64,000 nt of DNA, taken from the NCBI GenBank assembly GCA_950097015.1, contig CATNEN010000039.1, positions 17,422,001-17,486,000 on the forward strand, written 5' to 3'. Shown here in pieces: positions 5,535 to 64,000 of this stretch. Every line of letters starts with the position of its first letter. Within the stretch, counting starts at the first letter, position 1. A program made the translations under genes and the position numbers. The notes under the pieces were generated by a model. It did no database searches. It saw only the letters and a program-made list of their open reading frames with translations, and had not been told where the DNA came from. Origin of the DNA: Macrostomum hystrix (taxonomy: Eukaryota; Animalia; Platyhelminthes).

Positions 5535-7410
5535 CCACTCTACTCTCATTGTACCCACTCTACTCTCATTCTACCCACTCTACTCTCATTGTACCCACTC
5601 TACTCTCATTCTACCCACTCTACTCTCATTCTACCCACTCTACTCTCATTCTACCCACTCTACTCTCATTCTACCCACTCTATTCTCATTGTACCCACTC
5701 TACTCTCATTCTACCCACTCTACTCTCATTGTACCCACTCCACTCTCATTCTACCCACTTTACTCTCATTCTACCCACTCCACTCTCATTCTACCCACTC
5801 TACTCTCATTCTACCCACTCTACTCTCATTGTACCCACTCTACTCTCATTCTACCCACTCTACTCTCATTCTACCCACTCTACTCTCATTCTACCCACTC
5901 TACTCTCATTCTACCCACTCTATTCTCATTGTAACCACTCTACTCTCATTCTACCCACTCAACTCTCATTGTACCCACTCTATTCTCATTGTACCCACTC
6001 TACTCTCATTCTACCCACTTTACTCTCATTGTACCCACTCTACTCTCATTGTACCCACTCTACTCTCATTGTACCCACTCTACTCTCATTGTACCCACTC
6101 TAATCTCATTCTACCCACTCAACTCTCATTCTACCCACTCTACTCTCATTCTTCCCACTCTACTCTCATTCTACCCACTCAACTCTCATTCAACCCACTC
6201 TACTCTCATTCTACCCACTTTACTCTCATTCTACCCACTCCACTCTCATTCTACCCACTCTACTCTCATTCTACCCACTCTACTCTCATTGTACCCACTC
6301 TACTCTCATTCTACCCACTCTACTCTCATTCTACCCACTCTACTCTCATTCTACCCACTCTACTCTCATTCTACCCACTCTATTCTCATTGTAACCACTC
6401 TACTCTCATTCTACCCACTCAACTCTCATTGTACCCACTCTATTCTCATTGTACCCACTCTACTCTCATTCTACCCACTTTACTCTCATTGTACCCACTC
6501 CACTCTCATTCTACCCACTTTACTCTCATTGTACCCACTCCACTCTCATTCTACCCACTTTACTCTCATTCTACCCACTCTACTCTCATTCTACCCACTC
6601 CACTCTCATTGCACCCACTCCACTCTCATTCTACCCACTCTACTCTCATTGTACCCACTCTACTCTCATTGTACCCACTCTAATCTCATTCTACCCACTC
6701 AACTCTCATTCTACCCACTCTACTCTCATTCTTCCCACTCTACTCTCATTCTACCCACTCTATTCTCATTGTACCCACTCTACTCTCATTCTACCCACTC
6801 TACTCTCATTGTACCCACTCTATTCTCATTGTACCCACTCTACTCTCATTGTACCCACTTTACTCTCATTGTACCCACTCCACTCTCATTCTACCCACTT
6901 TACTCTCATTGTACCCACTCCAATCTCATTCTACCCACTTTACTCTCATTCTACCCACTCCACTCTCATTCTACCCACTCTACTCTCATTCTACCCACTC
7001 CACTCTCATTGTACCCACTCCACTCTCATTCTACCCACTCTACTCTCATTGTACCCACTCTACTCTCATTGTACCCACTCTACTCTCATTGTACCCACTC
7101 TACTCTCATTGTACCCACTCTAATCTCATTCTACCCACTCAACTCTCATTCTACCCACTCTACTCTCATTCTTCCCACTCTACTCTCATTCTACCCACTC
7201 AACTCTCATTCAACCCACTCTACTCTCATTCTACCCACTCTACTCTCATTCTTCCCACTCTACTCTCATTCTACCCACTCAACTCTCATTCAACCCACTC
7301 TACTCTCATTCAACCCACTCTACTCTCATTCTACCCACTCAACTCTCATTCAACCCACTCTACTCTCATTCAACCCACTCTACTCTCATTCTTCCCACTC
7401 TACTCTCATT
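5535..7410. repeat. 20-bp minisatellite (TACTCTCATTCTACCCACTC)n, ~94 copies
   Basis: Exact 20-nt periodicity visible. It explains the spurious YPLYSHSTH ORFs. Confidence 0.98.
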
Positions 7411-7896
7411 ATATTTTGAAAACCAGGAAATAAAAGTATGCATTAAAATGTCTAAATTTGAAATTTAAAGGTAGAGTATAACTATATAAAGATTCTATCA
7501 GACACTATATTTAAATGAATAACAGTGCAATAAAAAGAGCTATAGTTAACAGAATTTAACTTGAACTCAAATTTATCGGCTCAAACAAACTTAGCATTAA
7601 GACACTGATGGTGAAAAGATAGCTAAGTTGAAAACAAATTAGAAATGTCTATAATTTTCTAAGACTCTAAATAGTTTTTACAAGTAAGCAATAGAAAGTC
7701 TGTATTGATAAATAAGAAAATATTTTATGATCTGGTGCACAGCTAAAATAAAAATTAAAAAATGGCTTAAAGGACACCAAAAATCTCTTAGAATCTTGGC
7801 GCACAGCCACGTGTGAAATATTAATAAAAATGGGTGTTATGGACTTTGAAAAATTCTCGGAAAATAGTTATGTCCGCACAATGAGCAACTCATTGC

Positions 7897-14257
<6,361 letters not shown>

Positions 14258-49926: not shown

Positions 49927-51232
49927 TTAGAACAGATTCTGCAGATTGCGCCAGACCGTATCGGCTGTATTGCTGGCGTCCACCCGTTTCAGAAGGCCGG
50001 CTTCCGCGTAGCCGCGCAGAACAGGCCCGATGAGCTCGTGGTAGGCGGCGAGCCGTCTGGGCATCACATCCGGGAAGTCGTCCGGCAGTTTGATTAACGC
50101 CTCGCCGGTGACATCGTCTCGGCCGGGCACTTTCGGCGGCTGGTAGCTGTAGTGATAGACACGGCCGGAGCCAGGGTGGTGCAGTCGGCCGGTGATGCGG
50201 TCGGTGGCCACCTCGTCGGGCACGCTAAATTCGACGACCGAGGACAGGGCGCGGCGTCGTTCAGCCAGAAGCTGGTCGAGTCGGGCCGCTTGTCCGGCGG
50301 TGCGCGGGAAGCCGTCAAGAACAACGCCGGGTTCGCATTCACGCCGATCCAACTGTTGGGCGACCAGGTCGCAGACCGGCTCGTCGGCTATGAGACGGCC
50401 CTGGTTGATACTGGCTTTCATCTGCGGGTGGCATAAGAAGGGAACATTGGGTAACACAGGCAGGGATATGTGAGAGTAGAGATCCCAGGCTGAGGATATG
50501 GGAGAGTAGAGATTCCAGGCTAAGGATATGGGAGAGTAGAGATCCCAGCCTAAGGATATGGGAGAGTAGAGATCCCAGCTTGAGGATCTGGGAGAGTAGT
50601 GATCCCAGGCTGAGGATATGGGAGAGTAGAGATCCCAACCTGAGGATCTGGGAGAGTAGAGATCCCAGGCTGAGGAAATGGGAGAGTAGAGATCCCAACC
50701 TGAGGATCTGGGAGAGTAGAGATCCCAGGCTGAGGAAATGGGAGAGTAGAGATCCCAGCCTGAGGATCTGGGAGAGTAGAGATCCCAGCTTGAGGATCTG
50801 GGAGAGTAGTGATCCCAGGCTGAGGATATGGGAGAGTAGAGATCCCAGCCTGAGGATCTGGGAGAGTAGAGATCCCAGCTTGAGGATCTGGGAGAGTAGA
50901 GATCCCAGCTTGAGGATCTGGGAGAGTAGTGATCCCAGCTTGAGGATCTGGGAGAGTAGTGATCCCAGGCTGAGGATATGGGAGAGTAGAGATACCACTT
51001 GCCGACGTTCTCACCTGCTCATTGTTAGCAGCCGCGGTGCGCAACAATGAGCCCATATCAACATGACAGACGCCAAATTTGTCGGCAAATCGGCGCGCCT
51101 GCGTCCCCTTACCGGACCCAGGCGGACCAAGGAAGGCGACGTCAAGTTTCTGACGCTGCGAATGCGCCGCGTTGGTTTTGTCTTCTGAGGCAGGCTGCAA
51201 GCGGAGACAGTATATAGCACATTCTGTTTTCA
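49927..51232 (-). CDS. Adenylate kinase, AK2-like paralog B (divergent; start codon uncertain)
   Basis: An exon ending at 51015 carries [23 protein letters not shown]. Exon 50421-49927 carries VLDGFPRT, RITGRLHHPGSGRVYH and PPKVPGRDDVTGEAL. They are joined by a phase-0 intron at 51014-50422. The 5' boundary is either an ATG near 51232 or a splice acceptor near 51194. Confidence 0.85.
50462..50996. repeat. 30-bp minisatellite (TGAGGATCTGGGAGAGTAGAGATCCCAGCC)n, ~18 copies, forming almost the whole intron of AK paralog B
   Basis: 30-nt period within intron 50422-51014. Confidence 0.96.
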
Positions 51233-51837
51233 TTAACTCGATGAGTTCCATCATGCCCTTACAATGCCCTGCCTCCATCATCCCGAGTAAATAGAGAAAG
51301 TTACAATGAATAACGGCTCCAGTACTCACACAGCGATCTAAATTCATCAAAGCCTGCGCAATTGTCTTATCATTGCTTATAATTGCTGTTGGTCTATCTA
51401 CACTGATTAGCTAAGCCCTATAAACTGCCTATAGTGAGTTTCTGGAGCTTGCGATGGCAACGCAATTGAAGGACGCGCCGAGCGGAAGTAGAATGGAGTC
51501 TAGTCTAGTAGCTATCTAAATATAGGCTGCGAGTACTTTTCGCCTTGTTGTACTTTTCACATCGAAGCAGGCGGAGAGAAATCATAAGTGCAAGATAGAG
51601 TCTGCCAAGGAAACAGCGGCGAGCTTCTATGCTTTTAAACGAAGCCTAAGCCTGAGAAGTCTGAGAAGAAAATGTTTAGGACAAAGGAGGCCGACGAAAT
51701 TTTTTATACCGACTTTGCTAGTGAGGGCTAGTGACAGTAAGTTCTCATTTTCCAATATCTTAAGTAGTCGAGTAGATTCTGCTCGATTCAAAGTGTTTTT
51801 TTCTAAGAAGCAGCACTCATCTACTGATTAATTAGAA

Positions 51838-53087: not shown

Positions 53088-53186
53088 GCAAGTAGCTAAA
53101 ATCATAAGTACCTAGAATCTCAGCAAGATCAAGTAGTTAGAATCTCAGCAAGACCAAGTAGTTAGAATCTCAGCAAGACCAAGTAG
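53088..53186. repeat. Left remnant of the 25-bp satellite (AAGTAGTTAGAATCTCAGCAAGACC) interrupted by the LINE
   Basis: About 3-4 monomers identical to the array at 60254-63505, ending ...GACCAAGTAG. Confidence 0.9.
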
Positions 53187-53834
53187 CCATCTGAGCCATC
53201 TGATCTGAGCCATCTGAGCCATCTGAGCCATCTGAGCCATCATCGACAACTCCGCGAATACGCATCCGTTTGCAAAGCGACACATCACTATCGATAGAGC
53301 TTCCAACCGAGGTTAATCAGCTAAAATTTTAAGTAAAAACATTGTCAATTTGCTTTGTTTTCCTTTAAAAAGCGTCTGATTGCCTGCATTGAAATATTAC
53401 TGTGTTTTAGGCTCTCTACGAAAAAATATTTGTCTGTTAAAAAGTCACTGAATTTCGAATTACACAGCCAGTTATTGAAATACCAAACATTTTTTTTGTT
53501 TCAATTGTAAGAATTATCCAACACTCCATTTTGTGTAGTAATTAATTTTTCCTTTCTGTGCATTTTTCTTGAAGCATTGGTAAGAACTTCTTTAGAAACA
53601 CCTTGATAAAAAATTTTTTTATAAGCATCTGTTTTTCAAGCGCGCGTAGAGAGCCTTCATTGTACACCTTGTTTTGTACACTGATATCATTTCTCTCTCC
53701 CGTTCCTATCCTTTGGTGTACAATCAATTGGGGCTTCTAGGAAACCAGTTTTTCTATCGCTAGCCAGTAACTATAGCTCTAATAAAATATCTTAACAATG
53801 TTCTTGTACGTCTATTTGTAAAATCTCTGACCCA

Positions 53835-56357
53835 ATGAGCTTGACAGTTACTGACGACTCCACCCCCACCGCGCTGAGCGAGAGCATGGCGACAAGGCAA
53901 CACAGTGGAGAGCCTCATTTAGTCGAGAGAAAGCACAAATGGATAGCAGTCCAAGTTACAGAGGACGAGTGCGCTAAAGTGGATGGCCAGCCGTTTATCT
54001 ACTGCCGTGATTACCTCGATTCAAATCACACTGTACTATTTGACAAACTATTGCAAACCACTCCTTGGGAGTCGCGACGATGCGTTATAAGAGGAATAGA
54101 GCACAATGAACCTCGCAGGACATTTGCTTATGGAAAGCCATACTCCTACTGTGGAGTAGAATGGAAAGAGAACAACAACTGGCCTGAGGAGCTGCTCCAG
54201 ATTAAACAGTGCTTGTCAAAAGAATTTAATGTTGACTTCAACAGTGTCCTCCTAAATCTATATCGAGATGGACAAGACTCAATCCAGCTGCATCAGGATA
54301 ATGAGAAGTGTCTCGGCATCAACCCAGTCATTGCCAGCCTGTCTCTTGGAGCTGAGAGATGCCTGACTGTTGAGAACACGGACGAAAAACGGCATTACTC
54401 ATTAATAATGTCACCAGGCAGCATGCTGGTGATGCAAGGGGACTGTCAGACCAAGTTCAAACATGGAGTCCTAAAGACGAGGGAAAGCGCACCACGCATC
54501 AACGTGACATTTCGCCACATTGTGCCTGAATTAAACGATGTACCAAGCCGCAACGAGCCGACGCCCTCAGAAACGAGTATGGACATTGCAGTAAAGACGC
54601 CTGAGCAGATAATCGATGAAAGGAAAAAATCTGAATCGACTGATGCAGCTGATGCCCACTTTGACATCTCATTCCTCAGTCAGCCTCTTCAAGAAGCCAA
54701 GACGCGACTCGGGAAGCGGAAGCAAAAGCTGGCTGACAAAGAATCAGCTGCGTCCGCCGAAGAGACGACCGTGTTAGAAGATGCGAGCTTTAAGGTCCCG
54801 AAGACCAAAAAGTTCCGAAAAAGGAGATCACCCATGAAGGGAGCTGACAAAAGCGATAAAGCCGTACAGACAGAGTTGATTCCAGTAGATGCAGCAACTA
54901 ACACAGAGAACAACCTACTGATGGATACAGACTGGAAACGTTTGAAATCTCTCGAGGAAGGAGTCGCAGCGGTTCTCAGTGAAGTAAAACAACTGAAAAG
55001 TAGCTTGTCAATTGATGAGTACATTCAAAAGACTCGCAATGCGCTTCAATCCTTGACCACCGGTCTAATGCATCAGTTAGAGGCAAAAGCCAAAGAAAGT
55101 CAAACGGAACTACTGAAAGCGCTAAACATCACAAAATCCGACGTTGTGAACCATCTAAAGCAAACAAGTAGCTCAACTAAGGATGCTATCATTAGCGAAG
55201 AAAGAGCAGTGAAGGCAGAAGTAATAAAAAGCCAACAAATCAGCCACAGCCTCGAGCAGAAGGTCGGTGAACTGGTCAGTCTGCAAGCGCTGGCGTTCAC
55301 TAAGACGCAGAATGAAAGAGCAGGACGGGAAACATATGCTGAGAAGGCCTCGCGCTCAGTGAACCCAACAGCATCTTCAAAAAATGTAACGATGGCAGTC
55401 AGTGCCAGTAAAAATGCAGAGAACGCATCAGGAGCTGTAGCAAGGGACTCGGAACCAGCTGAGGCAGAAAGCAACAGTTGTACCAAACAGAAAGTTAAAG
55501 AAGGCCTGAAAAAGCATGATATAGTCGTTGTCAGCTCAAAGCTAGGGAAAGCCCTTGACTATCGCAGACTCTTCCCGAATAGTACAATTCGAGTTGTCTA
55601 CTACAACACTCAAGAAAGGCTCATTGAATTACTGCAAGAGCCAAACTTCAGTGCGCAAGAATGTCTGGTAATTGACTTAAACCATGAGCCATCAATGGAG
55701 GTGGCATATAAAGCTGTCACTGCAATTGACGCTGGGCAAAGGCAACACGGTGCGAATTGCCTGCACCTACTCATCATCCCAGACAGTTCGACACGAACAG
55801 AACAACTCTTCGAGAAAGAACTGTGTGAGTATGGTGTTAAACATCAGCTTTTAACATTTAACTTTCATGAAATCCACTTCTACGACGGTGAACTCAACAG
55901 CAGCGGAGCGGACTTTTTGTTTGCGTTAATGTCCAAATGCATTCGAAATCTAAACCTGAAAGTACGGCCGCATCCGGCTAACACAGAGAACCAGCGCCAG
56001 CAAACAGTGCATCACCGGCATCAACACAGCTACAGAGAGTCACGAGGCGGCGGTGCAACTGGCTACAGGAACTATCGAGCGCATAGCAGCTACCCAGTTC
56101 GAGATGCCAATTACATCCGTAGCGAAATAGACCACCGCATCAGCACCAACGGCTATTTTGACAGAAGTCGTGCTAGCCGCTATCGAATCAGCAACGAGTA
56201 CGACTACAACAAAAGAGACCGCAAAAACTTTATAAGTGGCTATCGCGCCAATATCGAGCCCAGCAACTACCGCAGAAGTAGCTTTGGGTACCGCAACAGA
56301 TACCAACAAGTTGGTGTCAGGCGCCTCGACGACCGCCAGTTTCGTTGCGTCGACTAG
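53835..56357 (+). CDS. Retrotransposon ORF1p (840 aa): AlkB/ALKBH2-3-like 2OG-Fe(II) dioxygenase + coiled coil + degenerate SGNH-esterase-like domain + R/Y/S-rich tail
   Basis: Residues ~55-230: EPRRTFAYG, YSYCG, FNSVLLNLYRDGQDSIQLHQDNE (H153-x-D155), IASLSLGAER, GSMLVMQG..KHGV (H210), RINVTFR (R221/R227). Residues ~365-490 are heptad-rich. Residues ~561-710: IVVVSSKLGKALDYRRLFP..HFYDGELNSSG. Confidence 0.9.
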   Translation: MSLTVTDDSTPTALSESMATRQHSGEPHLVERKHKWIAVQVTEDECAKVDGQPFIYCRDYLDSNHTVLFDKLLQTTPWESRRCVIRGIEHNEPRRTFAYGKPYSYCGVEWKENNNWPEELLQIKQCLSKEFNVDFNSVLLNLYRDGQDSIQLHQDNEKCLGINPVIASLSLGAERCLTVENTDEKRHYSLIMSPGSMLVMQGDCQTKFKHGVLKTRESAPRINVTFRHIVPELNDVPSRNEPTPSETSMDIAVKTPEQIIDERKKSESTDAADAHFDISFLSQPLQEAKTRLGKRKQKLADKESAASAEETTVLEDASFKVPKTKKFRKRRSPMKGADKSDKAVQTELIPVDAATNTENNLLMDTDWKRLKSLEEGVAAVLSEVKQLKSSLSIDEYIQKTRNALQSLTTGLMHQLEAKAKESQTELLKALNITKSDVVNHLKQTSSSTKDAIISEERAVKAEVIKSQQISHSLEQKVGELVSLQALAFTKTQNERAGRETYAEKASRSVNPTASSKNVTMAVSASKNAENASGAVARDSEPAEAESNSCTKQKVKEGLKKHDIVVVSSKLGKALDYRRLFPNSTIRVVYYNTQERLIELLQEPNFSAQECLVIDLNHEPSMEVAYKAVTAIDAGQRQHGANCLHLLIIPDSSTRTEQLFEKELCEYGVKHQLLTFNFHEIHFYDGELNSSGADFLFALMSKCIRNLNLKVRPHPANTENQRQQTVHHRHQHSYRESRGGGATGYRNYRAHSSYPVRDANYIRSEIDHRISTNGYFDRSRASRYRISNEYDYNKRDRKNFISGYRANIEPSNYRRSSFGYRNRYQQVGVRRLDDRQFRCVD

Positions 56358-56565
56358 GACCGCCTGTCCAAGCCTGTCCGGCAACAACTTCAATCGCCGG
56401 GGGGGTGGAGGAGTCATTTAGCTGCTCAACTCGGGTCCTCTAACTCCTTTGCCTAATAACTTTCTATTTTTGATACCGTCAATTCCCATACCGCGCAACA
56501 GGTTTTGAAGGTTTTGAACCCGTCGTGACTGACTCTAAGGACTACTACTCCCTCTTTCTACGAGT

Positions 56566-59500
56566 ATGTTAACTTCTACGCTAAATTTTAACTCCCGAAT
56601 AGTCACTGAAACACAGGGCAGCTGCGAAAAGAAGGTTACTTATAATAAATCAGAGTTGATTATCACCAGTTGGAACATAGATGGACTGATGCTCAGTGGA
56701 GAATGCAAAATGGAATCACCATGTTTCCACGAACATATTAGGAATAGAGACATAGTTTTCCTCTGTGAGACCCACGCCAAACAGGAGCAGCTAGACTCAA
56801 ACACGCTGATAGATTTCACCTGCTTTGGAGCAGATGGAATCAAGGCAAGGGGAATCAACAAAGGTAGATTATCAAATGGCATGGTTTTCCTCGTTAAAAA
56901 TAATATTGCAAAGAGAACCACATTAGTGCACAAATCTGACTTCGCTCTGGTACTAAAAATAAAGCAAAAGCAGTCTGAAGAACCCCTGTATATCTTAGGG
57001 TGCTATATCCCACCGGAAAATTCTAAATACTACAAAGAAGATATATGGGAGGAGATTAAATATCTCATCCAGCTCTTCTCAAGAGAGGGCTCCGTATTAA
57101 CAGTAGGTGACTTCAATGCACGAACTGGCACATTACAGTCCAGCACTAGGGATAAGTTTCCCAGACAGAATCAGGACTCTGAGAAAAACAAGCATGGATT
57201 AAGACTGATGGAAATGTGCTCCGAGACCAAGAGCACGATTCTGAACGGAATGACTCAGGGTGACATTATGGGAAATTACACGTTTAGTAGCACACTAGGC
57301 CGAAGTACCATAGACTACGCTATTGCATCCATGGATAAAGTGGATATTATAAAAGACTTCTTTATTCATCCTCAAAGCTTTCTGTCCAGACATTGCCCGC
57401 TAACAGTCACTCTGATTTTTCCTGATCATGTCCAACCAGAACACGCAAACCAGGAAAAACATGAATCCTTCCCAATGCCTCCAAGATGGGACACTGAAAC
57501 GCAGGGAAGTTACATTGAGGCATTGAATAACAAACAAAGCGAAGAAATAATTAGAAAGTTGCAATCTATCGACGCACACGATGGAAAATCCCTGGAAAAT
57601 TTGTTCTCGAGCTTGACCAACCTGCTTAGAGACTCAGTGGCAGAAAGCTGCGCAAAGACAATCATTCCGAACAAGTTCTGGACAAATCGAGACGAGACAC
57701 TAAGAAACTTGAGCAAATCATTAAAGTACGTGGCCAGGAAAAAAAGACGTAGACCAACTGACAGCGCGCTGGCATCAGAATATAATGGGCTAGCGAAAAA
57801 ATACAAACAACAGCTCAAGAAACTTAAGCAGATGGACATAAATGACTGCATTCAGAAAATGGCGGCTAACGGAACCTCAAAGGGATTCTGGTCCGGTCTT
57901 AGAAGAGCAGAAGAGTTGCTGTTCCCCAGCAGGAGACTTAACAGATCTCAAGCCCCAATCGCTGACATCGCGGACAACCTAACCAAAGTGTTTAACGCAC
58001 ATCCTTCTTCGGGAACCCAGCCGCATCGCACAGATGAAGCAGTTAGTCCCGAAGATTTAATTAGCTGCGTAGATCTCGATAGAGCAGTTAAAAAGCTAAA
58101 GAGAAGAAAGGCTGCAGGAATAGATGGTATAACAAATGAGCACATTATCTACGGACAAGAGAAGCTAAAACCCGTACTTCTGAAGCTTTTTAACGCAAGC
58201 GTAAGACTCGGCCAGACTCCTGCACAGTGGTCAAATGCCCTAATCACACCGATTTATAAAAAGGGTTCCCGTAGTGACCCCAAAAACTACAGACCCATAA
58301 GCGTGCTGCCTGCCCTGGCTCGCCTGTTTGCCTCACTTATCTATGAAAAGCTAGAAACTCATATTCGCACCCTCGACTTGCTTTCAGCCAGTCAAATAGG
58401 AAATAGAAAGGGCTACCGAACTTCAGACCACATTGCCACTCTCTTGACGTTGATCCACAACAAAAAGCGTCGCAAAAGGCCATTTCACTTAGTGTTCTTT
58501 GACTTAAAAAGCGCATTTGACATGGTCCACCATCCAACACTTTTCCAACGACTTAGGGAGTTAAAGGTCAGCCCAGAAATAATCGAAGCAATACAAAGCA
58601 TGTACTCAGGAGCTAAATTCCAACTGAAGATCTCAGATGGCCAAGCAACTAAGGCAAGGAGCATAACAAATGGAGTAAGACAAGGCTGTCCCCTATCCCC
58701 TCTACTCTTCTCACTCTATATAGATCCTTTGAGCACATTGCTAAGGGATTCATTTCGCAGCGACACCTTCATTAAAGATGAACAAATCAACAACTTGCTG
58801 TACTGCGATGATTTAGTGATCTTTGGAGAGAATCCTCGAGAGTTGCAGAAGGGCCTCGATAAAGTGTCAGAATTTTGTCAGAGCCACAAGCTAGAAATCA
58901 ATATGCAAAAAACTAAGGTTATTAGCTGTTGCCCTGACCCATCAAAGACGGCTAACAAACTATTTCTGCAGGGACAACTGTTAGATAGCGTCAAAGAATG
59001 GAAATATCTTGGCTTTCACATCAATGCTAAAGGAACCGTGGATTCCCATGCCACAGAGATTAACAAAAAATGTGGATATCCTATTCTTCTCTTAAGGAAA
59101 TTAGCCAGCCATGGGGCGGTCAGATACAATCAGCTCATGCTGTACTGCACAGCAATGATAGAAAGCATAGCTCTGTACGCCTCTGAGGCCTGGGGGGCTT
59201 TTGTCTCGTGGAACCTGGGTCCTTGGGACCGCTGTCTTTTTGAAAGAGTAAACATCAAGTGCTGTAAAGCCATACTACAAGTCAGCCAAAATACGGATGG
59301 CAACGGGGCCCGCTCGGAGTTAGGCAGATTGCCTTTATTATACAACATCCAGAAAAGAAGCATTTCGTACTGGGCCTCCATAACAAGCCGGCCGGACTCC
59401 ATAATTTCCAAGTTATTGGCGGACCAAACATACAGTGATGTTGGAATCAAAGCAAAGACCAACAATGAGGTTATGCTGAACTGCAGAGGCATTAGTCCTG

Positions 59501-60000
59501 CAAAAGCAATTGGAAACCACAGGAAAAATTTCGTTTCTCAGTTCGATACCCATTGGAGACAAAGGACACAGAACTCAAGCAAGCTAAGTCACTTCTATTA
59601 CTCCTTCAAGCAATATTATTCAGCCGAAAAATATTTACAACAAATATACAACCCGGAGTGGAGACGTACCATAGCCTCGTTTAGACTAGGAAACCATAAG
59701 CTAGCTTGCGAAACATTGCGAACTGCGAGACCGAAAATTCCGTATGCAAATAGATTATGTAGTAAGTGCAAAACAGAAGTTGAAAACGAGGACCACTTCC
59801 TTTTTAAGTGCACTTGGAATAAGTATAGCGCAGTACGTTCGAAATTTGAGACGGAAGTTTCTGGGAAAACCCCCAATTTCATATCCTTAACAGCAGAAGA
59901 AAAATCTAACTACATAATGGCTCAAGACGATAGGGAAACCGCTGAAGCTTTAGCAAAATACATCATAGAAATATCTAAAATAAGGGAACAGCTGCCCTGA
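56566..60000 (+). CDS. Retrotransposon ORF2p (1144 aa): APE endonuclease, reverse transcriptase, C-terminal CCHC
   Basis: APE: SWNIDGL, FLCETH, CYIPP, GDFNAR, IDY, SRHCPL. RT: KAAGIDG, PIYKKG, NYRPISVL, FFDLKSAFD, GVRQGCPLSP, YCDD, KYLG. C-terminal C-x2-C-x8-H-x4-C. No stops or frameshifts. Confidence 0.97.
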   Translation: MLTSTLNFNSRIVTETQGSCEKKVTYNKSELIITSWNIDGLMLSGECKMESPCFHEHIRNRDIVFLCETHAKQEQLDSNTLIDFTCFGADGIKARGINKGRLSNGMVFLVKNNIAKRTTLVHKSDFALVLKIKQKQSEEPLYILGCYIPPENSKYYKEDIWEEIKYLIQLFSREGSVLTVGDFNARTGTLQSSTRDKFPRQNQDSEKNKHGLRLMEMCSETKSTILNGMTQGDIMGNYTFSSTLGRSTIDYAIASMDKVDIIKDFFIHPQSFLSRHCPLTVTLIFPDHVQPEHANQEKHESFPMPPRWDTETQGSYIEALNNKQSEEIIRKLQSIDAHDGKSLENLFSSLTNLLRDSVAESCAKTIIPNKFWTNRDETLRNLSKSLKYVARKKRRRPTDSALASEYNGLAKKYKQQLKKLKQMDINDCIQKMAANGTSKGFWSGLRRAEELLFPSRRLNRSQAPIADIADNLTKVFNAHPSSGTQPHRTDEAVSPEDLISCVDLDRAVKKLKRRKAAGIDGITNEHIIYGQEKLKPVLLKLFNASVRLGQTPAQWSNALITPIYKKGSRSDPKNYRPISVLPALARLFASLIYEKLETHIRTLDLLSASQIGNRKGYRTSDHIATLLTLIHNKKRRKRPFHLVFFDLKSAFDMVHHPTLFQRLRELKVSPEIIEAIQSMYSGAKFQLKISDGQATKARSITNGVRQGCPLSPLLFSLYIDPLSTLLRDSFRSDTFIKDEQINNLLYCDDLVIFGENPRELQKGLDKVSEFCQSHKLEINMQKTKVISCCPDPSKTANKLFLQGQLLDSVKEWKYLGFHINAKGTVDSHATEINKKCGYPILLLRKLASHGAVRYNQLMLYCTAMIESIALYASEAWGAFVSWNLGPWDRCLFERVNIKCCKAILQVSQNTDGNGARSELGRLPLLYNIQKRSISYWASITSRPDSIISKLLADQTYSDVGIKAKTNNEVMLNCRGISPAKAIGNHRKNFVSQFDTHWRQRTQNSSKLSHFYYSFKQYYSAEKYLQQIYNPEWRRTIASFRLGNHKLACETLRTARPKIPYANRLCSKCKTEVENEDHFLFKCTWNKYSAVRSKFETEVSGKTPNFISLTAEEKSNYIMAQDDRETAEALAKYIIEISKIREQLP

Positions 60001-60208
60001 GACTACGAGATTTTACTAGCATTCAACAATAGATATTACATAATTTGTTTTATCCCTGGCGTCCCTTGTGTTTTTACTGCTCTTATTTTTAATACCTTTG
60101 CTTTCCCTTCCCAGCTCGATATTTGATTCCTACTTAACTTCGCTTTTTATGTTGCTTTTCGTTGTTCATTTAAATGTGTTGTTAAAAAATATATATATAA
60201 AAAAATCA

Positions 60209-60253
60209 GCACCCATAGATGGCGTGCGCGTTTTAATAATAATAATAATAAAA
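60209..60253 (+). other. LINE 3'-terminal stem-loop and (TAA)n tail
   Basis: GCAC-CCAT-AG-ATGG-C-GTGC hairpin (60209-60227) followed by TTTTAATAATAATAATAATAAAA. Confidence 0.7.
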
Positions 60254-63200
60254 AAGTAGTTAGAATCTCAGCAAGACCAAGTAGTTAGAATCTCAGCAAG
60301 ACCAAGTAGTTAGAATCTCAGCAAGACCAAGTAGATAGAATCTCAGCAAGACCAAGTAGTTAGAATCTCAGCAAGAACAAGTAGTTAGAATCTCAGCAAG
60401 AACAAGTAGTTAGAATCTCAGCAAGACCAAGTAGTTAGAATCTCAGCAAGACCAAGTAGTTAGAATCTCAGCAAGACCAAGTAGTTAGAATCTCAGCAAG
60501 AACAAGTAGTTAGAATCTCAGCAAGAACAAGTAGTTAGAATCTCAGCAAGACCAAGTAGTTAGAATCTCAGCAAGACCAAGTAGTTAGAATCTCAGCAAG
60601 AACAAGTAGTTAGAATCTCAGCAAGACCAAGTAGTTAGAATCTCAGCAAGAACAAGTAGTTAGAATCTCAGCAAGAACAAGTAGTTAGAATCTCAGCAAG
60701 ACCAAGTAGTTAGAATCTCAGCAAGACCAAGTAGTTAGAATCTCAGCAAGAACAAGTAGTTAGAATCGCAGCAAGACCAAGTAGCTAGAATCTCAGCAAG
60801 ACCAAGTAGTTAGAATCGCAGCAAGACCAAGTAGTTAGAATCTCAGCAAGACCAAGTAGTTAGAATCTCAGCAAGACCAAGTAGTTAGAATCTCAGCAAG
60901 ACCAAGTAGTTAGAATCTCAGCAAGACCAACTAGTTAGAATCTCAGCAAGACCAAGTAGTTAGAATCTCAGCAAGACCAAGTAGTTAGAATCTCAGCAAG
61001 ACCAAGTAGATAGAATCTCAGCAAGACCAAGTAGTTAGAATCTCAGCAAGAACAAGTAGTTAGAATCTCAGCAAGGCCAAGTATTATAGTTAGAATCTCA
61101 GCAAGACCAAGTAGTTAGAATCTCAGCAAGGCCAAGTATTATAGTTAGAATCTCAGCAAGACCAAGTAGTTAGAATCGCAAGTAGCTAGAATCTCAGCAA
61201 GACCAAGTAGCTAGAATCTCAGCAAGATCAAGTAGCTAGAATCTCATCAAGATCAAGTAGTTAGAATCGCAGCAAGACCAAGTAGTTAGAATCTCAGCAA
61301 GACCAAGCAGTTAGAATCTCAGCAAGACCAAGTAGTTAGAATCTCAGCAAGACCAAGTAGTTAGAATCGCAAGTACCTAGAATCTCAGCAAGACCAAGCA
61401 GTTAGAATCTCAGCAAGATCAAGTAGTTAGAATCTCAGCAAGACCAAGCAGTTAGAATCTCAGCAAGACCAAGTAGTTAGAATCGCAGCAAGACCAAGTA
61501 ATCGCAAGCAGTTAGAATCTCAGCAAGACCAAGTAGTTAGAATCTCAGCAAGACCAAGTAGTTAGAATCGCAAGTACCTAGAATCTCAGCAAGATCAAGC
61601 AGTTAGAATCGCAAGTAGCTAGAATCTCAGCAAGACCAAGTAGTTAGAATCTCAGCAAGACCAAGTAGCTAGAATCTCAGCAAGATCAAGTAGTTAGAAT
61701 CTCAGCAAGACCAAGTAGCTAGAATCGCAGCAAGAACAAGTAGTTAGAATCTCAGCAAGACCAAGTAGTTAGAATCTCAGCAAGACCAAGTAGTTAGAAT
61801 CGCAAGTAGCTAGAATCTCAGCAAGACCAAGTAGCTAGAATCTCAGCAAGACCAAGTAGTTAGAATCTCAGCAAGACCAAGTAGTTAGAATCTCAGCAAG
61901 ACCAAGTAGTTAGAATCTCAGCAAGAACAAGTAGTTAGAATCTCAGCAAGACCAAGTAGTTAGAATCTCAGCAAGACCAAGTAGTTAGAATCTCAGCAAG
62001 ACCAAGTAGTTAGAATCTCAGCAAGACCAAGTAGTTAGAATCTCAGCAAGACCAAGTAGTTAGAATCTCAGCAAGATCAAGTAGCTAGAATCTCAGCAAG
62101 ACCAAGTAGTTAGAATCGCAGCAAGATCAAGTAGTTAGAATCTCAGCAAGACCAAGTAGTTAGAATCTCAGCAAGACCAAGTAGCTAGAATCTCAGCAAG
62201 ACCAAGTACCTAGAATCTCAGCAAGACCAAGTAGTTAGAATCTCAGCAAGACCAAGTAGTTAGAATCGCAAGTACCTAGAATCTCAGCAAGACCAAGTAC
62301 CTAGAATCTCAGCAAGACCAAGTAGTTAGAATCTCAGCAAGACCAAGTAGTTAAAATCGCAAGTACCTAGAATCTCAGCAAGACCAAGTAGTTAGAATCT
62401 CAGCAAGATCAAGTAGCTAGAATCTCAGCAAGACCAAGTAGTTAGAATCCCAGCAAGACCAAGTAGCTAGAATCTCAGCAAGAACAAGTAGCTAGAATCT
62501 CAGCAAGACCAAGTAGTTAGAATCTCAGCAAGACCAAGTAGTTAGAATCTCAGCAAGACCAAGTAGTTAGAATTGCAAGTACCTAGAATCTCAGCAAGAC
62601 CAAGTAGTTAGAATCTCAGCAAGACCAAGTAGTTAGAATCTCAGCAAGATCAAGTAGCTAGAATCTCAGCAAGACCAAGTAGTTAGAATCCCAGCAAGAC
62701 CAAGTAGCTAGAATCTCAGCAAGAACAAGTAGCTAGAATCTCAGCAAGACCAAGTAGTTAGAATCTCAGCAAGACCAAGTAGCTAGAATCTCAGCAAGAC
62801 CAAGTAGTTAGAATCTCAGCAAGACCAAGTAGTTAGAATCTCAGCAAGACCAAGTAGTTAGAATTGCAAGTACCTAGAATCTCAGCAAGACCAAGTAGTT
62901 AGAATCTCAGCAAGACCAAGTAGTTAGAATCTCAGCAAGACCAAGTAGTTAGAATCTCAGCAAGATCAAGTAGCTAGAATCTCAGCAAGAACAAGTAGTT
63001 AGAATCCCAGCAAGACCAAGTAGCTAGAATCTCAGCAAGACCAAGTAGTTAGAATCTCAGCAAGAACAAGTAGCTAGAATCTCAGCAAGAACAAGTAGCT
63101 AGAATCTCAGCAAGACCAAGTAGTTAGAATCTCAGCAAGACCAAGTAGTTAGAATCTCAGCAAGACCAAGTAGTTAGAATTGCAAGTACCTAGAATCTCA

Positions 63201-63505
63201 GCAAGACCAAGTAGTTAGAATCTCAGCAAGACCAAGTAGTTAGAATCTCAGCAAGACCAAGTAGTTAGAATCTCAGCAAGATCAAGTAGCTAGAATCTCA
63301 GCAAGACCAAGTAGTTAGAATCCCAGCAAGACCAAGTAGCTAGAATCTCAGCAAGAACAAGTAGCTAGAATCTCAGCAAGACCAAGTAGTTAGAATCTCA
63401 GCAAGACCAAGTAGTTAGAATCTCAGCAAGATCAAGTAGCTAGAATCTCAGCAAGAACAAGTAGCTAGAATCTCAGCAAGACCAAGTAGTTAGAATTACA
63501 GCAAG
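60254..63505. repeat. 25-bp satellite (AAGTAGTTAGAATCTCAGCAAGACC)n, ~130 copies, with interspersed 16-bp deletion variants
   Basis: 25-nt periodicity over ~3.25 kb. Confidence 0.98.
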
Positions 63506-64000
63506 ATATCTAGTATCTAGAATTGCAGCAGGATCTAGTTACCAGGAGAATCGCTGCAGGATCAGTCCCTAGAATCGCGATTTGATCATCTGCTTCCATA
63601 TTTAATAAATGAGATTTGCCCAATTCACACGCAACACAGGCATGCTTCTCAATTCCTCCTATTCACGGCTCGCAGGGCCCTCCTGGGGAAATTGATGCCA
63701 GGTTAAAAAAAACCGGATTAAACTAGTTTAGGAGCGAAAATGAAATAAAAAGCAACAATTAAGATAAATAGAAGCTCTCCCATTGTTTGATAGTAAATTA
63801 AAAAAGCGAGGTGGGGATAGATTCTGTTTCCCTAAAACAATTGGGAGCATGACAAATCCAGGCTGAATTTTTTCTATCTAATCTCGAGCTTCGCGCAGCT
63901 CGTCTTGCATGGGGAGAACAAAACAATGTAACAAATGCAAAAGCAACACAATGAACACAAGCAGAAATGTCTTACTAGCTAAACAGTGATTTATTAATGC

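Follow-up and report, generated by a model that had tools for sequence, protein, structure and literature searches.

The window, that is, the whole 64,000-nucleotide stretch of Macrostomum hystrix DNA analysed here, contains an intact, recently active non-LTR retrotransposon of ~7 kb at 53187-60253. This full-length copy and all features described below are on the + strand. Its boundaries come from blastn against copies on other contigs, with the junctions read directly. The core common to the copies spans 53212-60251, with 99.8-99.9% identity to other contigs over 7040 bp. The insertion site is a 25-bp satellite, which spans 53106-53186 and 60254-63506, and a target-site duplication of 6 bp, AAGTAG, can be read at both junctions (5' copy at 53181-53186, 3' copy at 60254-60259).

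The ends of the element are LINE-type, with a 5' repeat and a (TAA)n tail. The 5' UTR (53187-53834) starts with ATCTGAGCC repeats (53187-53238), whose number varies between copies, and the 3' UTR (60001-60253) has the (TAA)n tail at its end. No ribozyme or other RNA family was matched by Rfam within the element.

Two open reading frames lie between these ends, ORF1 with 840 aa (53835-56357) and ORF2 with 1144 aa (56566-60000). In terms of Pfam, ORF2 matches Exo_endo_phos, Exo_endo_phos_2 and RVT_1, with the AP-endonuclease (APE) at aa 35-278 and the reverse transcriptase (RT) at aa 565-819, and there is no Pfam match to RNase H. The best PDB match of ORF2 is L1 ORF2p (E=2e-34). A CX2CX8HX4C motif is found at the C-terminus (aa 1065-1082, nt 59758-59811). 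The Atlas search with ORF2 returned only unnamed APE-RT clusters. Among the copies, the ORF2 matches begin at aa 7, 17, 107, 123, 139, 209, 280 and further points up to 843, and all finish at aa 1144. The element is a LINE, as it has APE and RT in ORF2, no LTRs, variable 5' truncation, a common 3' end and a target-site duplication. An intact APE-RT non-LTR element had been proposed in the original prediction, and this holds, with both ORFs open.

The AlkB domain and the remainder of ORF1

Judged by ligand residues and fold, the N-terminus of ORF1 carries a complete ALKBH3-like AlkB Fe(II)/2-oxoglutarate (2OG) dioxygenase domain, at aa ~45-232 (53967-54530). Residues 68-227 match the Pfam family PF13532 (2OG-FeII_Oxy_2) with E=3.4e-25 and 89.8 bits (cut-off 31.2), and the match covers profile positions 17-194 of 194. 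In a PDB sequence search, human ALKBH3 comes first (E~3e-26) and ALKBH2 second (E~2e-14) among the solved relatives. The AlphaFold2 model of aa 31-245 has a mean pLDDT of 89.1 and a pTM of 0.85. Its predicted fold, a double-stranded beta-helix core with a nucleotide-recognition lid, is nearest to ALKBH3. The top Foldseek matches are human ALKBH3 (TM 0.77-0.80, E 2.5e-19; entries 8jnk, 8jnr, 2iuw and 9ncz), then ALKBH2. The original prediction had placed an AlkB domain at the start of ORF1 and named a profile search and AlphaFold as checks; both bear it out.

The catalytic residues can be assigned by alignment to ALKBH3. N141-L-Y143 (2OG contact) and H153-Q-D155 (iron ligands), at 54255-54299, align with N179/Y181 and H191/D193. 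The distal iron ligand H210 and the 2OG salt bridge R221-x5-R227, at 54462-54515, align with H257 and R269/R275, and the residue numbers of the original prediction (H153/D155, H210 and R221/R227) were correct. R94 aligns with ALKBH3 R131. The ALKBH3 hairpin residues R122/E123 and D189 are not kept in the PDB alignment, with I85/R86 and Q151 found instead. In alignments of 18 and 56 sequences the catalytic residues are invariant or nearly so, with N141/Y143 and H153/D155 invariant in both. All iron/2OG ligands are kept across transposon copies of only 32-57% identity. A predicted fold like that of ALKBH3 speaks for the repair of m1A/m3C in single strands rather than for the removal of m6A marks.

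Comparison of copies and reading of the junctions confirmed that the domain is intron-free, in frame, uninterrupted and within the element boundaries, as had been proposed.

As for the remainder of ORF1, a linker joins the AlkB domain to a long helical segment, after which come an alpha/beta domain and a tail rich in Arg/Tyr. The helical segment is a proline-free stretch of 160 aa (aa 351-510; 54885-55364) in which hydrophobic residues recur every 3.2-3.6 positions, so that a long helix or coiled coil is probable. For the coiled coil of the original prediction, this stretch and its periodicity are the only support. The C-terminal domain, at aa ~560-715 (55512-55979), has a beta-alpha-beta pattern in a single-sequence AlphaFold2 model with a pLDDT of only 42. 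Neither Pfam (at E<=10) nor a PDB sequence search gave a match for it, and the Atlas language-model lead to SGNH/GDSL families is weak (0.86). The label "esterase" that this part had been given is therefore not supported. The Arg/Tyr/Ser-rich tail (55992-56354), with 17 Arg in the last 80 residues, is presumed from its composition to be disordered and nucleic-acid-binding. Pfam recognises no RRM or zinc knuckle in ORF1.

Copies, relatives and a second lineage

ORF1 residues 1-252 are identical in five full-length copies found on five contigs. At least 8 copies in the same genome run from ORF1 into ORF2, and dozens of 5'-truncated copies have 97-100% identity. Two 5'-truncated copies (L006 and L007) end inside AlkB. 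AlkB, the ORF1 body and ORF2 are also found together on single contigs in four public runs. One of these contigs carries genomic flank of the copy C38, so the public-run contigs may be DNA.

Older relatives have the same arrangement. AlkB is kept in a decayed relative with 82% DNA identity (L053), and deep relatives keep it (48-59% identical) on the same ORF1 body (41-49% identical), with all catalytic residues present where the frame survives. Other copies lacking AlkB, which would have pointed to a one-off chimera, had been named as a way to refute the original prediction. This test fails, because no full-length copy lacks AlkB and the older, diverged relatives have it too. AlkB is stably inherited as part of the window's LINE lineage.

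A possible sister subfamily without AlkB was considered, with two sequences (L054 and L055) of 87-88% DNA identity that start just after AlkB. It was rejected, as the two have nothing in common upstream of that point, which indicates independent 5' truncations.

Unique substitutions within the family amount to 8 synonymous and 3 non-synonymous in ORF1, and to 1 and 0, respectively, in AlkB. For AlkB of the window's family the evidence of selection is indirect only, since dS is saturated against the nearest relatives that carry AlkB.

A second LINE lineage of the same genome (L035/L036, L037/L038 and L042) carries AlkB inside ORF1, at aa ~170-370, with an APE-RT ORF2 downstream. This ORF2 shares only ~24% identity with that of the window element, the ORF1 has a CCHC knuckle, and the copies adjoin snRNA genes. 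The two lineages therefore differ in ORF2, ORF1 body, AlkB position and insertion behaviour. In the second lineage, dN/dS is 0.07 for AlkB and 0.089 for ORF2, with 0.16-0.35 for the rest of ORF1. AlkB is thus under strong purifying selection there, and as constrained as ORF2.

In terms of origin, a single origin (monophyly) of the transposon AlkB domains is not rejected (AU p=0.249). In a tree of 47 AlkB sequences the window clade has 100/100 support but is unplaced, and the backbone is without resolution. The window AlkB lacks the loop insertion of metazoan ALKBH3. Its inter-strand loop after HxD is short, like that of bacterial AlkBs of ~200 aa and unlike that of metazoan ALKBH3.

Beyond this genome, a word-indexed protein search with the AlkB part as query gave no match, and the same kind of search found no detectable homologue of the ORF1 body among 5.8 billion proteins. 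A full HMMER search gave AlkB-domain matches only, with ORF1-like similarity in none of the longer matches. These longer matches were AlkB+OTU+CCCH, AlkB+3'-5' exonuclease, spider and M. lignano proteins, and the window AlkB shares only ~40% identity with those of M. lignano. A profile search aimed at long fusions gave bacterial AlkBs of ~200 aa only, since its length filter went with the profile. Hence, the word-indexed, HMMER and profile searches of proteins found no AlkB-ORF1 fusion outside this genome.

Possible role of the AlkB domain

LINE ORF1p coats the RNA that encoded it and is regarded as an RNA-binding chaperone, so a fused enzyme would be concentrated on the element's own RNP. ALKBH3 acts on m1A/m3C in single strands. 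N1-methyladenine and N3-methylcytosine lesions disrupt base pairing and stall reverse transcriptases. The AlkB domain, enriched on the RNP, would oxidatively strip lesions of this type from the single-stranded template RNA, and nascent cDNA or the nicked target strand are perhaps also substrates. As the lesions stall reverse transcriptases, more full-length copies would be made once they are gone. We assign a probability of roughly 0.6 to this reading, in which an intact LINE uses an ORF1p-fused AlkB for clearing m1A/m3C from its own RNP, aiding reverse transcription. The self-protection role put forward in the original prediction, where the enzyme would clear the RNA, cDNA or target of the element of RT-blocking or silencing methyl groups, is still an inference. 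The presence of AlkB in a LINE suggests that methylated bases limit the copying of the element. The reading follows the analogy of AlkB in plant RNA viruses, for which the same task has been proposed, and two observations from elsewhere are relevant. AlkB domains from viruses act as RNA demethylases in vitro, and maintenance of genome integrity has been proposed as their role (PMC9289625, citing van den Born 2008). Pre-treatment with AlkB lets reverse transcriptases, including a non-LTR one, read methylated RNA (PMC12140624).

An improbable alternative is epitranscriptomic counter-defence, where AlkB would erase host-deposited m6A, or m1A acting as a mark, that destabilise or sequester the element RNA. 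For orchid Ty3/Gypsy elements this role has been suggested, and their ALKBH5-like protein has m6A demethylase activity in vitro (PMC9289625). MT-A70 (METTL3/14-type) domains are encoded at 2-3 loci of the M. hystrix genome. However, the window AlkB is ALKBH3/ALKBH2-like in sequence and fold, not ALKBH5/FTO-like. Moreover, human L1 is promoted by m6A and suppressed by ALKBH5 in cells (as summarised in PMC7873242), so that a LINE would not clearly gain from the loss of m6A. Removal of 3-methylcytosine or 1-methyladenine from DNA, rather than RNA, has a similarly small chance in our estimate. The lesions would then be by-products of host DNA methyltransferases that target transposons, or would lie on the exposed single-stranded target or cDNA in target-primed reverse transcription (TPRT). 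DNMT1/3 make 3mC off-target and co-evolve with ALKB2, and all three of DNMT1, DNMT3 and ALKB2 are said to be retained in Macrostomum (PMC9246332). C5-DNA-methyltransferase domains occur at three loci of the genome, and single-stranded DNA is an ALKBH3 substrate (structures 8jnk and 8jnr). Against this, ORF1p primarily coats RNA, no ALKBH2-type feature for handling duplex DNA was identified in the domain, and ALKBH2 ranks below ALKBH3.

It is very unlikely that the AlkB fold is no more than an added module for binding single-stranded nucleic acids or for chaperoning, with no catalysis. An ORF1 protein has to bind RNA, and no RRM or zinc knuckle is seen here by Pfam, but the retention of every iron/2OG ligand at 32-57% identity and the dN/dS of 0.07 in the second lineage are more than binding alone needs. 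The copies refute an artefact: the five full-length ones have different flanks, the truncated L006 and L007 end inside AlkB, single contigs span the junction in four public runs, and older relatives have the same architecture. The probability is therefore negligible for an assembly error, for a host gene adjoining a LINE, and for a host ALKBH3 exon picked up once by one copy.

Comparison with known systems

The described types of LINE ORF1 accessory domain are RRM, CCHC, PHD and esterase; to our knowledge AlkB is absent from these modules, and literature searches found no description of AlkB in LINEs. An enzyme that edits nucleic-acid chemistry is outside this described repertoire. The window element has the same modular plan as LINEs whose ORF1 proteins carry accessory domains: in ORF1 the accessory domain is N-terminal, a helical segment comes next and another domain lies at the C-terminal side, and ORF2 has APE and RT. 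It is set apart by its AlkB module and by an ORF1 body for which no homologue was detected among 5.8 billion proteins.

Human ALKBH3 and ALKBH2 have the fold and the catalytic residues in common with the window AlkB, which is ~30% identical to human ALKBH3. However, they are free cellular repair enzymes, whereas the window AlkB is fused to a LINE ORF1 body. Plant RNA viruses (Alpha-/Betaflexiviridae and Closteroviridae) likewise have their own AlkB on a selfish, RNA-templated replicon, and it is proposed to remove methyl damage from their own RNA (in the passages of PMC9289625 on viral AlkB). In the viruses it sits in an RNA replicase polyprotein, whereas in the window it is part of the RNA-coating ORF1p of a reverse-transcribed animal retrotransposon.

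The nearest transposon precedent, and the only one we found, is the Gypsy element of orchids with an ALKBH5-like gene. The Ty3/Gypsy element of Phalaenopsis is likewise a retrotransposon with a fixed gene for a demethylase of the AlkB superfamily. As PMC9289625 presents it in the parts concerned, this is a plant LTR element with a separate extra ORF of the ALKBH5 (m6A eraser) subtype, in a single lineage. The present case, in contrast, is an animal non-LTR element with an ORF1 fusion of the ALKBH3 subtype, in two LINE lineages.

The retention of AlkB in two LINE lineages, together with the dN/dS of 0.07, argues for a large benefit in this host. Tentatively, the presence of an ALKBH3-like ORF1 module in two unrelated LINE lineages, by independent capture or by transfer between lineages, could mean that base methylation is a strong barrier to TPRT in the host. 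The methylation might be of the m1A/m3C type on RNA or single-stranded DNA, or DNMT-derived 3mC, and the barrier either chemical or host-imposed; ORF1p-tethered AlkB would then be an undescribed class of repair or counter-defence enzyme encoded by retrotransposons. With an RNP-tethered AlkB it can be tested directly whether retrotransposition is limited by methylated bases, be they in the template or in DNA intermediates that are single-stranded. A parallel in the laboratory is the treatment of RNA with AlkB ahead of reverse transcription.

Lastly, the dozens of transposon-borne AlkB copies could pass for host ALKBH2/3 genes in surveys of animals that relate ALKB2 to DNA methyltransferases (PMC9246332).

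AlkB domain and structure of the element

The element is a LINE with two open frames on the forward strand. ORF1, its RNA-coating protein, has 840 aa (window 53835-56357, +), and ORF2, the APE-RT protein, has 1144 aa (window 56566-60000, +) and starts 208 nt after ORF1 in a different frame. At the N-terminus of ORF1, PF13532 (2OG-FeII_Oxy_2, AlkB family) covers aa 68-227, scoring 89.8 bits (E=3.4e-25; Pfam cut-off 31.2 bits). Ranked by sequence match, the closest solved structures are human ALKBH3 (E~3e-26) and ALKBH2 (E~2e-14), then ALKBH7 and NMAD-1. Residue-by-residue alignment with ALKBH3 pairs N141/Y143 with N179/Y181, H153/D155 with H191/D193, H210 with H257, R221/R227 with R269/R275 and R94 with R131, in agreement with the numbering of the original prediction (N-x-Y, H153/D155, H210, R221/R227). 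These columns are invariant or nearly so in alignments of 56 and 18 AlkB sequences. An AlphaFold2 model of aa 31-245, built on the 56-sequence alignment, has a mean pLDDT of 89.1 and a pTM of 0.85. Its top Foldseek matches are human ALKBH3 structures (8jnk, 8jnr, 2iuw, 9ncz; TM 0.77-0.80; E down to 2.5e-19), followed by ALKBH2. Since all these results concur, the AlkB domain proposed for ORF1 is confirmed, far beyond chance. In sequence and fold it is ALKBH3-like, as opposed to ALKBH5/FTO-like.

Downstream of AlkB, ORF1 is composed of an acidic/basic linker, a probably helical stretch (aa 351-510, +; 160 residues that lack proline and show helical periodicity), a domain at aa ~560-715 and, by composition, an Arg/Tyr/Ser-rich tail at the C-terminal end (+). 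Part of ORF1 had been labelled an esterase, a label that was not confirmed: the aa ~560-715 domain has no Pfam match and no PDB sequence match, its language-model lead to SGNH/GDSL families is weak (score 0.86), and its single-sequence model (pLDDT 42) is too poor for use. ORF2 contains Exo_endo_phos, Exo_endo_phos_2 and RVT_1 (Pfam), with a CX2CX8HX4C motif read at its C-terminus (aa 1065-1082, +). No Rfam family, ribozymes included, matched anywhere in the element.

The sequence reads as a variable-length run of ATCTGAGCC repeats at the 5' end (from window 53187, +), a (TAA)n tail at the 3' end (+), and AAGTAG flanks at window 53181-53186 and 60254-60259, which form a target-site duplication. 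The unit common to copies on other contigs is 7040 bp (window 53212-60251, +; blastn, 99.8-99.9% identity). The insertion lies by the edge of a 25-bp satellite, AAGTAGTTAGAATCTCAGCAAGACC, which it splits (>130 units, window 53106-53186 and 60254-63506). Satellite targeting by this family is not evident, because its other copies have unrelated flanks. Upstream, a 30-bp minisatellite of 17.8 copies (window 50464-50997) gives rise to long spurious ORFs on both strands. One 266-aa ORF spanning it (window 50550-51350, -) includes some sequence similar to a P-loop exon of adenylate kinase.

Copies and older relatives

In a whole-genome search, five contigs each have a copy whose ORF1 lies in an open frame of 853 codons, and the first 252 residues of ORF1 are 100% identical among these five; some 5'-truncated copies end inside AlkB. 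Among ORF2 matches (97-100% identity), at least 8 copies extend into ORF1, dozens are 5'-truncated at differing points, and nearly all reach the last residue, aa 1144. This is the pattern of a classic LINE. Unique substitutions between copies are 8 synonymous and 3 non-synonymous in ORF1 (1 and 0 in its AlkB part), and 11 and 10 in ORF2. Four public runs, all belonging to one study, also contain single contigs of 6.4-6.5 kb that carry AlkB, ORF1 body and ORF2 together; as the assembly may itself derive from these runs, whose type is not stated, the contigs show contiguity, not expression.

A decayed copy (L053, 82% DNA identity) keeps AlkB pieces at 80-83% protein identity. Deep relatives on contigs C2, C41 and C7 have AlkB domains 48-59% identical and adjoining ORF1 bodies 41-49% identical, the architecture being preserved. 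Comparison of the window element with the C2 relative gives a dN of 0.38 at saturated synonymous divergence, with NLYRDG, HxD, the distal His and RINVTFR all retained. AlkB is really part of the element: other copies might have lacked it, but the five full-length copies and the older relatives carry it, and AlkB-less starts are truncations.

A candidate AlkB-less sister subfamily, two copies at 87-88% DNA identity starting just past AlkB, was rejected; what lies upstream of one copy is unrelated to what lies upstream of the other, which marks the two as truncations of independent origin. Four copies truncated independently at the 5' end (L044, L055, L054 and L052; element coordinates 1254, 1345, 1368 and 1417) start no more than ~160 bp from the point where AlkB meets the ORF1 body, which may be chance or a favoured stop of reverse transcription.

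A second AlkB-bearing lineage

There are 76 AlkB matches genome-wide, and transposon-borne copies far exceed any host ALKBH2/3 gene in number. Macrostomum is cited as retaining ALKB2 (PMC9246332), and in comparative DNA-methylation studies such copies could make ALKB2 seem more widely present than it is, or confound its scoring.

Most remaining matches (36-41% identity) are in open frames of 780-925 codons. All four loci fully read have AlkB mid-ORF1 (aa ~170-370), then an APE-RT ORF2 of 950-1000 aa. These families (L035/L036, L037/L038 and L042) are mutually related, with ORF2 identity of 42-87% and alignable ORF1 bodies, two of which have a CCHC knuckle. Compared with the window's lineage, ORF2 identity is 23-25%, ORF1 likeness is limited to AlkB (35-38%), and the C-terminal CCHC motif of ORF2 is absent; by these comparisons, the two lineages are unrelated. 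The window's lineage is dispersed, with the window copy within satellite; the second adjoins U5 (L035:2144-2262) and U1 (L042:9230-9392) snRNA genes, and one family is found in tandem arrays that repeat every ~6.3-6.5 kb (G000:C12:3679080-3692590; C29:3903040-3934631). This adjacency and periodicity suggest that the elements insert site-specifically into snRNA genes repeated in tandem.

In pairs of moderately diverged second-lineage copies, dN/dS of AlkB is 0.07 (two pairs) and 0.10 (a deeper pair), against 0.089 for ORF2, so the constraint on AlkB equals that on the reverse transcriptase protein. The rest of ORF1 has values of 0.16-0.35.

Another LINE-type RT family has intact ORF2 frames of 1260-1305 codons (G000:C39:8666170, C1:17657824, C7:2800465 and others). 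No AlkB match lies near any of its copies, which suggests that AlkB-less LINEs coexist in the genome.

Origin and possible role of the AlkB domain

A full HMMER search against 1.84 billion representatives gave top matches of only ~43% identity, mostly ~200-aa bacterial-type AlkBs, along with ALKBH3-like proteins of metazoans (Tubulanus, Holothuria, Argiope, Macrostomum lignano). In a maximum-likelihood tree of 47 sequences, whose backbone is without resolution, the window's clade is solid (100/100) and the second-lineage AlkBs are weakly monophyletic (92/71). A single clade of all transposon AlkBs stays compatible with the AU test (p=0.249). Both groups have two short loops: one is likewise short in M. 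lignano proteins, and the other matches bacterial AlkBs in being short, metazoan ALKBH3 having a long one. One acquisition with module transfer, or two acquisitions, are possible.

A full-text literature search found no description of AlkB in any non-LTR retrotransposon. The precedents known are RNA viruses of plants and, among LTR elements, a single orchid lineage (PMC9289625).

At the sequence level, the analysis establishes a complete, catalytically equipped and apparently selectively maintained ALKBH3-like domain fused to the RNA-coating protein of seemingly active LINEs. Reverse transcriptases are stalled by m1A/m3C-type lesions. We infer that the fused AlkB would act on the element's own RNP and strip such lesions from template RNA, possibly also clearing cDNA or target ssDNA. 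This reading draws on the ALKBH3-like nature of the domain, on plant-virus AlkBs, described as demethylating RNA in vitro and thought to maintain genome integrity (PMC9289625), and on laboratory AlkB, reported to let reverse transcriptases, including a non-LTR one, read through methylated RNA (PMC12140624).

Two other roles stay viable, because MT-A70 domains and C5-DNA-methyltransferase domains are each present in the genome. Erasure of regulatory m6A, to which the MT-A70 domains would be relevant, has a reported precedent in an orchid Gypsy element (PMC9289625), but m6A is reported to favour L1 in human cells (PMC7873242), and we consider this role improbable. Repair of DNMT-derived 3mC on DNA (PMC9246332), in line with the C5-DNA-methyltransferase domains, seems equally unlikely beside lesion removal within the RNP.

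Finally, locus L043 (G000:C10:300000-309999; duplicates on C41:369410-372262) has two tandem intron-free ORFs of 360 and 421 aa (L043:4567-5646, - and 6700-7962, -), 96% identical. Each combines an AlkB domain with a zinc-finger-like region at the N-terminus (CEP104_ZnF, a weak match). This AlkB shares only ~25-31% identity with those of the LINEs and clusters with an ENA protein (P0004), and the ORFs are a candidate host gene or another mobile element.
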